Origin: Ophelia neglecta
Lineage: Eukaryota
Length of the DNA stretch: 64,000 bases
NCBI GenBank assembly: GCA_965285935.1
Contig: OZ260663.1
Coordinates: 73,842,001-73,906,000, forward strand
Direction of reading: 5' to 3'
Part shown: piece after piece, positions 44,101 through 50,100 of the stretch
Layout of the letters: every line of letters begins with the position of its first letter
Numbering within the stretch: the first letter of the stretch is position 1
Position numbers and translations under genes: made by a program
Notes under the pieces: model-generated
Told to the model about the DNA's origin: nothing
Seen by the model: the letters and a program-made list of their open reading frames with translations, nothing else
The model's database searches: none

Positions 44101-47100
44101 CAAAGGAATTATTTTGCATGGTGGGTACCCTATACTTTTTTACAGAACCGGAACCACTACGGGGTACAACCGTTTTACACGTGTATGGAAAACGATGGTT
44201 TAACACACGGCCTGCTTCTCCTCAATAGCAATGCCATGGGTAAACAATGTTTGTTCTATGCTTTTATTTCTACTAATTTTAGCCCCATACATGTATAAAT
44301 AGTATTGAATATTGGCCAAAATGCGCATTTCCAATTTTATAATTTGCTCATGCAGTTTGTGAATGGGATTAGACTATTTGAAGACTTTTTAATTTCCGTT
44401 TACCTGTCACAGAACTCGATGTTGTCTCTACCTGGTCTCACGTTTGCCGTTTACCTGTCACCGTTTACACCCTGTCCTCTCTACCTGCCCTGGCGTTTAT
44501 CGTTAAACTCTCCTAGATTCCTCGCAGTTCCCTCTACCGGCCTTCACCTTTCTCGTTTTCCTCGCACAGAGTACACGCTGCGCCCTCTAGCTGTGCTCGC
44601 GTTTCTCGTTTTGTTCTTTACCTCTCCCAAATTTTTGCTGTCCTCTCTACCTGTTCTCAAGTTTCACGTTTACCTGGTTGTCACAGATTACTCGCTGTAT
44701 GCTCTACCTGCAGTCACGTTTTCTGTTTACGCCCCTGTCGTTCTCAAATTGTTCCCTCGACCGGTCCTCACGTTTGCCGTTTACCTCTCACTTTTCCCGT
44801 TTACTTCTCACAGATTACTCGCTGTCCCCTCTACCTGCCCTCACGTTTAGGACTATCGGTGGAGTACTTGACTTTTACATGTTCCTTGGACCTGACCCGG
44901 AACACGTTGTTCAGCAGTACACTGGGGTAAGCACACATCTTGTTCTATAATCATGACTCCGTCACATCAATATCACTAATGATGTTAGCTTTTAATACAT
45001 GTATGTGTTACGGTTTGTATTTTGGTTTATAACTGTAAACCTATACATCTCGCTATCTTCATTTTATTCATACGTTTAAAGCTTCATTGGTTAAAAGAAT
45101 ACCTGAGTATGAACTTACATTTTCTATAGATGTCAGCATGAACTTGTTCAAACATTCAAATTACTTAAATTGGTTGGCTTCATTGATATCTTTATTCGTG
45201 TCAATTTTTTGTTTTTAAAATGCCATATTTTCTCAGCTCGTAGGGCGACCATTTATGCCCCCGTATTGGGCACTTGGTTTTCAACAAAGTCGGTTTGGCT
45301 ACAACAACTTACAGAACATGACCAAATCAGTGGAACGAACTCTCAACGCCGACATTCCCCTGGTGAGAAAACATGAACCATGCCATACTGTTCGAACTCA
45401 ATGCTGTCCCTTTGCCTCACAGTTGCCGTTAAAGCTAAAAACGTATCATTTTCCACAACTTTAGGACGTTCAATATGCAGACATAGATCACTATGACAAG
45501 AGGAGGGTTTTTACAATAGATGACGAAGCCTTTGACGGGCTTCCTGAATACTTTGACAGTCTACGTGAGAAGGGAATGAGAACTGTTATCACTTTGGTAA
45601 GAGGTTATTGGGAAAATGGTGAAATCATTGGTCTTAGTGAAATAGTCCTACACCATACTCCCAATTTAAATTGTTCATGTTTAAGACCCTTCCGATATAC
45701 AGTTTCACCGAGTCAGTATGGATGTTTATAGCTTTAAATATTGGTCCTGCTGTTATCAATATTGTACCTTTCAGAATACTGCCTTCAAAATCAACGAACC
45801 TGGGTATGAACCTTACCAAAAGGGCTTAGAAAACGACATCTATATAAAATGGCCGTCCAGGGAGATGATGCCGCCCGCAGACTTCGATGAAACTAACACC
45901 ACTGCCATGCTCGGTTATGTAAGTCTTCTTAACTCATTGAAAAGAAAACATTTACAAATGTCCAATAAATTTGTACAGTATTATGTCAATCGCTTATAAA
46001 GGTCACTTGGATTGTGGAATAAATCACTTCCATGATATACTACTTCAGCTATGGCCAGGTAAAGTTGTCTTCCCTGATTTCTCTCTTCCGGCGACGGGAG
46101 GCGTCTGGTCAGATCTGATAGTCAAACACAGAGATAACATCCCCTTTGATGGTCTGTTGCTGGTAAGTTTATGCTTCCTAAAATAATAGTGTATCTATGT
46201 TTGATTGTATCTCCATAGCAATGTTACGTGAATGAGTAGGGGTCTTAGTAAATTACTGCTGCCCAGGATGTGGGAACAGGTCAGTAATAAGTTAATCTAA
46301 CAGACCTAAGCCAAGCTATGTGAATTGTACAAGAGTTTATATGAAATAAAGGCGGCTGTGTTTGTATATAATTGGTAACAAAGTTCATTCCATGGAGACC
46401 TTTTTGTACAGTAATTTAATAATGCCTAATACCAATTTGAATTTCCCATTGTTGCCTTATTAGACCTCATTATCAACTTAATACTAACCTCGGTTTGAGA
46501 CGAGACAAGGCTCATCGTTGTAACAGATAGGCATATTATTTGTATAAAGAATAGTTCCATATAACTCTGAATGTCCGATTTGAGGGGCGCCATATAGGGC
46601 CGAAGTTTTGTGGCAAGTTCTACAATTCCAATTGTTTAGGAATCAGTTATCTATTTTCAAATACTGCTAAATAAGATTTTAAGGGGAAATGATTATATAT
46701 CCTGGAGTGGGTCCATTGCTTAACAATACTACGATATTTATAATGCAAAGTTAAGAACTGCCATTCTGGCAACTTCAGTCGCCTATACAATGGACGTCAA
46801 ATCAATGTTTTCCAGGACATGAACGAGCCGGCTAATTTTGGAACCAATGACTACTGGGTGTGGAATATGTCTAATGCCGAACCGGACTGGAGTCTAAAAT
46901 GTCCGAACAACCAGTGGGAGGATCCACCCTTTAGAACGAGTTTGTGTTTGCGATGTTCTTCTTATTCGTTGAAACTTTAGCTAATTAAGCTTGGCCTTTG
47001 GCAAAAAAGAGCCACCGTCTGCGATGCTTGCTTATTACTAAATATTGATTTGCCTATAATATTTCATATTCATCTTATAGTGAACGAATTTGCTCATGAC

Positions 47101-50100
47101 AAGAAAACACTAACTATCCGGGGAAGTAAGTCTCGCTTATCAGACAGAACTTTGTGTATGTCGGCCGTACAAGGAAATGGCACATACAGACACTACGATG
47201 TACACAGCCTCTACGGAACAACCACTGTACCGCCTACTCTGAGGTTGTTATCTCATTGGAATCCTTTGTCATCTTTTGGGCTGACACCCTTTATTGCTAG
47301 CATTGAATACATTATAAGTTTATGGTTTGCCTATTGTTTATTAAAAAAAATAAGAGTCTTTTTTATGATTTCTCATTCTGTCAAACTATTACCGCTATGA
47401 ATTTTGTTCGAAAGCTCCTTAGAAATACAGTCCAAATAAAGCTGCCAATACAGTTTTCGGTTTGAAGTAGGCGAATAAATTTTCTAAGCGAAAGTCCATT
47501 AACATTGCCGCATATGCATGAATACGAGCGACCAATAACCTTTGATAGAATATTGTAAAATGAGGAATTGTTCTGGAAAAAAAATAGCCGCCAGAAACAG
47601 TTAATATTGAACATTTATGTCAAATATCCAATGATTTTCTCTGATTGGGGCGTATGAGTTTAAATTTCAGTTTATTGCAGTGGTCTGAGGGAGGCGAGCG
47701 GAGAGCGCGGCCTCGTGATGACAAGGTCGACCTTTGTAGGGAGCGGCCGACTGGCGGGACACTGGCTCGGGCACAACTATGCTACCTGGTCCGATCTCAA
47801 AGACTCCATCATCAGCATGCTTGAATTTAATCTATTTGGTATTCCTTATGTAAGTCCAGGGTAATAAATGTTTTTTTATGAAATAAAATCTGGTAGTATC
47901 AGTTACCTCTTTATAACAGTGACGTATAACTTGGATATTTTATTTCATTATTCTCATAGGTTGGAGCGAACATTTGTGGATACTGGGAAGAAACTAATGC
48001 TAACTTGTGTAAAAGGTGGCTCCAACTGGGCGCGTTCTATCCGCACTCCAGAACCCACAACAACATCAATAGTGTCACGGAAAATGTAAGTTACAACACA
48101 CACCTTCTCAACAGTACCTTCTCAACAGTACCAAAAAACCTAAGTAACCCACGACGACATCAGTAATGTCACATGACAAAAAACGTTAGTTAGGAAACGG
48201 ACGACATTGAAGCCAAAACATACTTTAAAATTGCCACCTACCAGCTAGCTCTACTGTAAACTAGGGGTTTGTACAGACTTGTATAACACCTTGGGTGAGC
48301 TAGTTCACAAAATATTTATTTTGGACAGAGGTCATTACTACAGTCATATGCAAGTACTGGTCATTCAAGTTAATTAAGGCTAATACCCCTGAAAATATAA
48401 AATGAAACTAGAAATTAACAATATAACAAATTATATACACATTAATCACTGCATACACAGATAACACAATTACATTCATACTGTCATTATCATTTCAACA
48501 TTTACTCGGTTATACACATTAACATACATACTGGCCAGTTACAACATGCATTTACTATTACACTTATACAACCTTTCATACAGTTTATATAATGAGTACT
48601 AAACCAAAATAATAAGCTGTTTAGGACATAGTAACTAAAGAGAACACTCGTCATACCCTTGGGGAAAGGAGGGATTCAGGTTCACTACAATCTGGAGCCT
48701 TAGCCATATCTATAGGACACTTTAGACCAACCTACAACAAATCAAGAGTCCAACCACACTTACATCAAGAGAATAAAGGAATACACTGTAAGATATCTAA
48801 ATGCTGCATTTGTAGCTATACAACTGGTTAATTATAAAATAGACTTCCACTCTGATAGTTGTGTACAGCAAGCTAAAATAGGCTTACCCAAGATACCGGA
48901 TTTCTAACAGAAAACTTCTGACCCTAACAGTCTGCTGGCTGGATGGCTTCTGAGTTTACCTTTCAATTATTTTCCTGCCCTAACCAGAGAGGAAGTGATT
49001 AAGACTGGCCTTCTAATTGGTCAGCTTGGCCAAACAATCTCACTCTGGAGACAGCCTCTTTATTTTACAGGAAACACATAGCTATAGGGAGGTCACCATT
49101 CATAATACCATACAACACAACTTTAACCCTATGTGTGAGGGTGTCACAGGCAATAAACATATTAGCATCTGGTTACACTACTATTAAAGTAAACTTAATA
49201 TTAAAATTGGCTTCAGTAATTGCTTTATTATCTTGTCTTGCTATTTTGATTGAAGCAGGATTTAATTTGCTAAAAATTACCAGTTCCATAGCCGGCCATA
49301 AAGCATCTATTTATAAATATAGGCCCACGCGCATATTACTTTATAACTATGAGGTAAGTTCACGTGAATTTACCTATATTGTCTCTATATAAACCAGATT
49401 ATCTCTTGCAATTATTACGAAATATATTCTAGGATCCGGCCAGTTTCGACGATCAAGTAACTGCTGTAGTGCGTGACGCGATCATGACTAGATACCGTCT
49501 CCTCCCCTATCTATACACCCTCTTCCACCAGGCTCATGTCTATGGCTCGACCGTCATCAGACCACTACACCACGAGTGAGTCAATTCCTCGTTTCGGAGA
49601 ACAGTCCTTTGGTGCTACAAAAAATATACCACCCATGGACTTTTATTACATATGCCAACACCCTGCGCCAATTGATTGGGCATTGCAATATCACAAAATT
49701 ATCTATAAGTATTATTATAATTGGGAAGCATTAGATTTAATTGTTGTTTTACTTTTGCTTGTATAGATTTCCCACCGATGTAAATGCTCGTTCTATCAGC
49801 CACCAGTTCATGTGGGGGAAGGCAATCTTATTTTGTCCAATTTTAGAAGTAAGTACTATAGGCCTAACCTTTTTGCTATGATCGAATAACGAGCTTTATT
49901 GTGTATTCTGCCCGGTCTTTCCTTTTATCGAATATCGTTATATGTATAGAAGTTAGTCTGTGCAGTAGTATAGTAGGCTTCCTATTTATATTTTCCTTTC
50001 AGGATGATTCTCATAGGGTCCATCAATTCTATATGCCAAAAGGTCTATGGTATGATTTTAAAAGGGTAAGTGGGTTACATGTCTGTAGTCAGTCTAAGAT

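Follow-up and report, generated by a model that had tools for sequence, protein, structure and literature searches.

What is a glycoside hydrolase family 31 (GH31) module kept for once it has lost key aspartates of its active site? The question arises in a 64,000-nucleotide stretch of the 762 Mb genome of the animal Ophelia neglecta (contig OZ260663.1, positions 73,842,001 to 73,906,000; hereafter the window, in whose coordinates positions are given below). Its plus strand carries two tandem genes, A and B, and the first GH31 module of gene B (B1) has replaced three active-site Asp that the corresponding module of gene A (A1) retains. Judging from sequence comparison, we consider B1 probably to be a GH31 module that is conserved but catalytically disabled and serves in binding or as a scaffold, and an independent invertebrate counterpart of mammalian MGAM2.

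We compared the active-site motifs of B1 with those of A1. At the site of ntMGAM D327 (GAA D404), the A1 sequence VIIL-DP (GAC, 14754-56) reads VITL-NT in B1, with Asn533 encoded by AAT at 45775-45777 and Thr for Pro at the next codon. GLWV-DMNE (TGG, 15125-27) is replaced by GLLL-DMNE (TTG, 46157-46159), which places Leu617 at the W441 site. The DMNE of B1 (46816-46827) keeps the nucleophile, Asp619 (GAC, 46816-18; 15257-59 in A1). The acid/base motif HWLGDN (GAC, 17103-05) is HWLGHN in B1, with His745 (CAC, 47772-47774) at the position of ntMGAM D542 and GAA D616, and GADICGF (GAC, 17315-17) is GANICGY, with Asn774 (AAC, 47969-47971) at the D571 site (GAA D645) and Tyr778 (47981-83) in place of Phe (F575Y in ntMGAM numbering). 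The His of SRTHN, equivalent to ntMGAM H600, is kept (CAC, 48056-48058). The three Asp substitutions, the Trp-to-Leu change and the retained nucleophile had been reported in a first-pass annotation of the window, and every codon that it named was recovered at its stated position.

Exon-by-exon alignment to solved structures put the B1 His opposite residue 542 and the Asn opposite residue 571 of ntMGAM chain 2qly_A, and His745 aligned to the Asp of HWLGDN in MGAM, SI and GAA chains. Exon 8 alone gave no match to solved structures, and the equivalence of Asn533 to D327 was taken from the A1 motif and the module alignment. Measured against ntMGAM, the -1 pocket of B1 is changed at three positions (D327N, W441L and D571N) and conserved at R526, W539 and H600, which leaves the set of sugar-binding residues incomplete. 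As for the residues of a competent GH31 enzyme, the nucleophilic Asp is present, preceded by Leu instead of Trp, and the acid/base Asp is absent. The first-pass annotation had described the three lost Asp as lining the -1 subsite; this holds for the equivalents of GAA Asp404 and Asp616, which contact the ligand directly, but Asp645 does so only through water (PMC9389588).

The remodelling of the pocket includes further changes, namely Pro to Thr, Trp to Leu, Phe to Tyr and an altered loop after the nucleophile, where DKPWNWP gave way to YWVWNMS in B1. Also next to the motifs, GFFGD became GYWEE. Aromatic residues were gained near the B1 motifs (Asp to Tyr, Lys to Trp, Phe to Tyr and Phe to Trp). 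The barrel gained no Arg or Lys beyond the exchanges K347R and K528R and lost one Lys. All three Asp changes are one-base steps, and both Asn replacements are G-to-A transitions to an isosteric residue.

Could these substitutions be errors of assembly or consensus? The reads come from three DNA runs of one sample in one study, possibly the assembly's own source, and they exclude a consensus slip rather than represent an independent individual. Contigs of all three runs match the window at these B1 codons, the four substituted ones among them, while carrying other alleles nearby, so that the codons put forward in the annotation stand in reads as well. The changes are moreover spread over four exons, among many other differences between the two genes, and we give an artefact practically no weight. 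Across the 18 acid/base exons found in this genome, His occurs solely in B1, as does GANICG.

The exon models of the two module 1 copies, on which the following comparisons are based, are:

11559-20784, plus strand: gene A anchor exon 1b and GH31 module 1 (A1), the canonical comparison copy
42052-51700, plus strand: gene B anchor exon 1b and GH31 module 1 (B1), 21 exons, AG/GT throughout, stop-free
42052-42840, 42939-43105, 43715-43889, 44146-44239, 44814-44926, 45237-45362, 45465-45596, plus strand: B1 exons 1-7
45775-45918, 46049-46162, 46816-46939, 47081-47243, 47681-47849, 47960-48085, 49433-49575, plus strand: B1 exons 8-14
49767-49848, 50003-50065, 50315-50445, 50899-51002, 51120-51169, 51313-51468, 51639-51700, plus strand: B1 exons 15-21

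Module 1 has 21 exons in both genes, with AG/GT flanks and equal phases at 21 of 21 exons per copy and no stop codon, in agreement with the conserved splice sites described earlier. Exon lengths are equal in 18 of the 21; in each of the remaining three the difference is a multiple of three. Over 919 codons, A1 and B1 share 72% identity, with a non-synonymous divergence (dN) of 0.18, a synonymous divergence (dS) of about 1.7 and a dN/dS of about 0.11, a value that is approximate owing to the saturation of dS. Within the reads, nine variants fall into B1 exons, seven of them synonymous and two Thr/Ser exchanges (chance of at least seven synonymous out of nine, 5e-4, binomial). Low dN/dS together with synonymous-biased polymorphism means that selection on B1 is both long-standing and current: the module is maintained, not decaying.

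These data bear directly on the view that gene B is drifting, as a duplicate that is not transcribed or has died recently. No RNA run was found for the stretch and B1 evolves faster than A1, as such a view would have it. Had the gene drifted since so old a duplication, however, the 21 exons would not have stayed open, and in fact more than 41 exons across modules 1 and 2 of gene B have kept open frames and canonical splice sites although synonymous divergence is saturated. The dN/dS of about 0.11, the polymorphism of seven synonymous to two non-synonymous variants and the conservative nature of the B1 changes at conserved columns outside the pocket likewise speak against it, and we hold a dead duplicate to be very improbable. 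The earlier verdict of selection rather than decay is therefore sustained for gene B as a whole, by its open reading frame, dN/dS and polymorphism, but not established for the charge changes themselves.

To place the changes in time, a tree of 43 modules can be consulted, in which A1 and B1 pair with 100% support and C1, from a third gene of the array, joins them next. A2 and B2, the second modules of genes A and B, likewise pair, followed by C2; the window modules group with mollusc MGAM-like modules. The losses in B1 postdate the A/B duplication in this tree. End branches measure 0.11 for A1 and 0.23 each for B1, A2 and B2, and B1 evolved about 1.7 times faster than A1. Relative-rate tests with six outgroups gave 47-65 changes unique to B1 versus 27-37 unique to A1 (p 0.005-0.04), whereas the counts for A2 and B2 were symmetric.

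The acceleration of B1 is centred on the pocket. Derived changes in B1 and A1 numbered 23 versus 6 in the barrel, 16 versus 7 in the N-terminal part and 7 versus 8 in the C-terminal domains. At the 119 columns conserved to at least 95% in canonical modules, A1 deviates twice, B1 11 times, A2 22 times and B2 18 times. Columns conserved to at least 90% contain 12 B1-specific deviations, six of which lie in the four active-site motifs (Fisher p 3e-5) and five of which are conservative hydrophobic swaps. The clustering noted in the first-pass annotation is thus borne out, since the active-site motifs hold a significant excess of the B1 changes at positions that are otherwise invariant. The pocket of B1 has escaped catalytic constraint and been reshaped on a preserved fold, as expected of a module without substrate turnover.

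Reading the clustered charge neutralisation as a sign of selection for a new ligand, as had been suggested, does not follow. When catalysis ceases to be needed, no invariant sites other than the catalytic residues become free to vary, and each of the two Asn arose by one transition that yields an isosteric side chain. The same Asp-to-Asn pair also recurs in modules whose nucleophile is lost too.

The second modules of the two genes lost other catalytic residues. The features concerned are:

21129-29818, plus strand: gene A module 2 (A2), first 20 exons, exon model
54915-63150, plus strand: gene B module 2 (B2), first 20 exons, exon model
25872-25997, 26905-27081, 27369-27488, plus strand: module 2 motif segments of gene A
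59127-59392, 60422-60598, 61075-61194, plus strand: module 2 motif segments of gene B

At the nucleophile position, A2 has Tyr (GLYL-YTNE) and B2 has Glu (GLLI-ETNE); both have HSLGDN for HWLGDN and SRSNS for the His motif. They therefore lack the nucleophile, Trp539 (Ser) and His600 (Asn), and they keep the three Asp lost in B1. Being common to A2 and B2, these losses predate the A/B duplication. The second modules resemble B1 in that all are GH31 modules of the same proteins that have lost catalytic residues and remain in open frame (across 20 exons of module 2 in A and B) at a dN/dS of about 0.11; they differ in that A2 and B2 lost the nucleophile before the duplication and B1 lost three Asp after it. 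Since the nucleophile of B2 was already gone, gene B as a whole is without a canonical catalytic site. The second exon of A2 ends in a GC donor (AAG-GCAAGT, 22035-22037), where gene B has GT.

A third tandem gene, C, lies just downstream (contig positions 73906001-73942000, about 4-29 kb past the window end), and its two modules are canonical at every motif recovered (ILDP, WIDMNE, HWLGDN, GADICG, and SRNHN for module 2). Canonical catalytic sites across the array thus number two in gene C, one in gene A and none in gene B.

We propose the following course of events. Gene B arose long ago by tandem duplication of an alpha-glucosidase gene of the sucrase-isomaltase/maltase-glucoamylase type, whose product is membrane-anchored and has two GH31 modules; module 2 had by then already lost its nucleophile. 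After the A/B duplication, B1 lost its acid/base (Asp to His) together with two Asp and one Trp of the sugar-binding -1 pocket (now Asn, Asn and Leu), and the loops near the pocket were remodelled. The acid/base is essential for hydrolysis of ordinary glycosides, and the changed module is predicted to be no longer an efficient hydrolase of ordinary alpha-glucosides, while its fold, above all the barrel, is held under strong purifying selection. Because barrel and fold are constrained, B1 would be kept for a job that needs structure but not turnover, most likely glycan binding or else a scaffolding or partner role on the cell surface. With a catalytic residue lost and a fold under purifying selection, B1 has the properties of a pseudoenzyme; we infer both the loss of activity and the binding or scaffolding role.

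Several observations weigh against B1 being a catalytically disabled module. It keeps the nucleophile and the equivalents of Arg526, Trp539 and His600, residues for which a module without any catalysis would have no use. Between A1 and B1, conservation is highest in the barrel; this fits a pocket still in use and may just as well point to residual or altered catalysis. In a marsupial MGAM2 fragment (P0146), the Asn pair stands beside both intact catalytic Asp, so that the pair may be a change of specificity, not a consequence of inactivation. The dN/dS figure is approximate, dS being saturated, and a search of sequencing runs for the stretch returned three DNA runs of one sample and no RNA run.

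Most of these points also favour an enzyme of altered chemistry, in which the nucleophile of B1 would work with His745 as acid/base, or without any acid/base on substrates with good leaving groups, or on a differently substituted, for example anionic, sugar. The retained residues, the strongly constrained barrel, the aromatic residues gained near the motifs and the marsupial fragment with its Asn pair and intact dyad are all compatible with it. An acid/base His with a kept nucleophile is moreover present in two other animals, the crinoid Antedon mediterranea (P0018:920-1602) and the aardvark Orycteropus afer (P0271:1880-2513), where it arose independently; the aardvark module also has Leu for Trp441. 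On the other side, four pocket residues of B1 changed at once, and the literature searched yielded no GH31 enzyme with a His acid/base. In human GAA, a single change, D645N or D645H, is enough to reduce activity severely (PMC6737665), and D645N nearly abolishes it. This position equals Asn774 of B1, although the GAA variants are disease alleles of an active enzyme and the B1 residue is a fixed state under selection.

The anionic variant of this idea, raised in the first-pass annotation, drew nothing further from the sequence. GH31 sulfoquinovosidases (YihQ type), which act on an anionic sugar, keep the Asp-Asp dyad and bind the sulfonate through a Q/E-RWY motif (PMC12780224). B1 lacks the acid/base of this dyad; for the RWY residues, whose positions were not directly aligned, what was seen is the lack of new Arg or Lys in the barrel (K347R and K528R aside, with one Lys lost), and the only cationic gain is the His. 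For the alternative chemistries proposed earlier we found no specific support, and altered catalysis by B1 seems to us unlikely, if worth keeping in view.

A related proposal is that B1 traps sugars as a receptor, holding a long-lived glycosyl-enzyme that cannot be hydrolysed without the acid/base. A kept nucleophile beside a lost acid/base is the arrangement this calls for, and acid/base mutants of retaining glycosidases do accumulate the intermediate when given activated donors. Natural alpha-glucosides, however, need acid catalysis in the first step too, which would make trapping very slow, and the residues that hold the sugar in the -1 pocket of B1 are altered as well. We regard trapping as highly improbable, and return to a catalytically disabled B1 as the reading that the pocket and the selection data suggest.

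How unusual the B1 state is among animals was assessed on 391 modules of public SI/MGAM-like proteins, with 307 of them canonical at eleven key positions. Asp fills the acid/base column in 382 of the 391. In the 381 modules scorable at the D327 and D571 columns, both are changed in 11, one in 9 and neither in 361, counts that are uncorrected for kinship. Both figures put the B1 changes beyond chance. The raw association between the two columns is strong and suggests that the D327 and D571 equivalents change together far more often than singly. The Asn pair was found in at least five lineages, namely in mammalian MGAM2 N-terminal modules, hemichordates, two further lineages and B1. Paired replacement, mostly by Asn and with F575Y, occurs in P0007, P0009, P0146, P0160, P0103, P0028 and P0012, and the full combination D327N, D571N and F575Y is present in the MGAM2 N-terminal and the hemichordate modules. 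It is conceivable, though in our judgement doubtful, that the Asn-Asn state marks an unrecognised functional class of animal GH31 modules with changed specificity or binding, in which the nucleophile and His of B1 may still support chemistry (His acid/base, activated donors or covalent capture).

The closest known parallel to a catalytically disabled B1 is MGAM2. In placental mammals this tandem duplicate of MGAM has lost key catalytic Asp and gained a Thr-rich domain, and it has been argued to be probably inactive and to have taken on a new role (PMC6451114). It shares with gene B its origin by tandem duplication of a membrane-bound GH31 gene with two modules, as well as a Thr-rich region and mutated catalytic Asp, and its N-terminal module (P0007, P0009) shares D327N, D571N and F575Y with B1. 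That module has Glu at the nucleophile (and in hamster Asn at the acid/base as well); in B1 the nucleophile is intact, the acid/base is His and W441L comes in addition. MGAM2 arose in mammals, independently of gene B. B1 is thus probably a new, invertebrate instance of a kind of case already known from the MGAM2 proposal. In other families (GH1, GH18), Klotho, the pro-region of lactase-phlorizin hydrolase and the chitinase-like lectins are glycosidase folds without catalytic carboxylates that serve as co-receptor, folding helper and lectin; no homology to B1 is implied. A literature search pairing "GH31" with "pseudoenzyme" found nothing, and one on the contacts of the sugar beet enzyme found docking papers only.

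The nearest public proteins are "maltase-glucoamylase-like" proteins of molluscs, nemerteans, annelids and brachiopods, with 46-52% identity to A1 or B1, affinities that mark the animal as a spiralian. Searches for orthologues sharing the N/H/N triad of B1 remained short of one: the acid/base exon against all proteins reached 75% identity at best, a word search 71% in short fragments only, and a search seeded with a snail homologue returned gastropod, nemertean, scallop, annelid and brachiopod proteins, none of them more than 52% identical to A1 or B1 across a module. Trefoil-bearing GH31 proteins of two or three modules are frequent among molluscs, annelids, nemerteans, brachiopods, rotifers, crustaceans and echinoderms. 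Two-site members have been stated to arise in vertebrates (PMC6451114), with which these invertebrate multi-module proteins are at odds.

If B1 is indeed a disabled module, brush-border-type GH31 genes have repeatedly yielded conserved, probably non-catalytic paralogues outside mammals. One tandem array (genes C, A and B) would then hold every stage, a natural series on what modules do after sugar digestion stops. The recurrent Asp-to-Asn pair is testable in mammalian MGAM2. For annotation, the label "maltase-glucoamylase-like" on such genes does not imply enzyme activity.

The two genes that carry these modules are:

about 10121 to 31950, plus strand: gene A, a two-module GH31 gene
about 40810 to past the window end, plus strand: gene B, a two-module GH31 gene of the same build as A

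In spliced models, each encodes a type II anchor, a Ser/Thr-rich stalk, a trefoil domain and two tandem GH31 modules, and these models together with the trefoil match give both genes the sucrase-isomaltase/maltase-glucoamylase architecture. The B1 exons match Pfam PF00088 (trefoil) and PF01055 (GH31 TIM-barrel), the latter with 25.7-59.8 bits for exons 6, 7, 12, 13 and 14 against the curated cut-off of 23.5, which places B1 in GH31. A whole-genome profile scan likewise gave PF01055 matches at 47640-47855 and 47939-48097. Gene B extends past the window end, where a conserved exon lies at a position equivalent to 64220-64402. For the first exon there are two candidates per gene (10121-10396 or 11559 in A, 40810-41118 or 42052 in B), each with a Met start and its own membrane span. 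A run of N lies at 28861-29014.

Two features of module 1 stood out beside its coding changes. Between A and B, exons 3 (43715-43889) and 12 (47681-47849; the exon that bears the Asp/His difference) have proportions of synonymous differences (pS) of 0.35 and 0.45, compared with 0.65-0.85 in most other exons, which may reflect old gene conversion or codon constraint. In intron 13 of gene B, the segment 48227-49221 looks like a repeated element: in each of the three runs its contig depth is about 10x that of the sequence on either side, and several joints and loose ends occur there.

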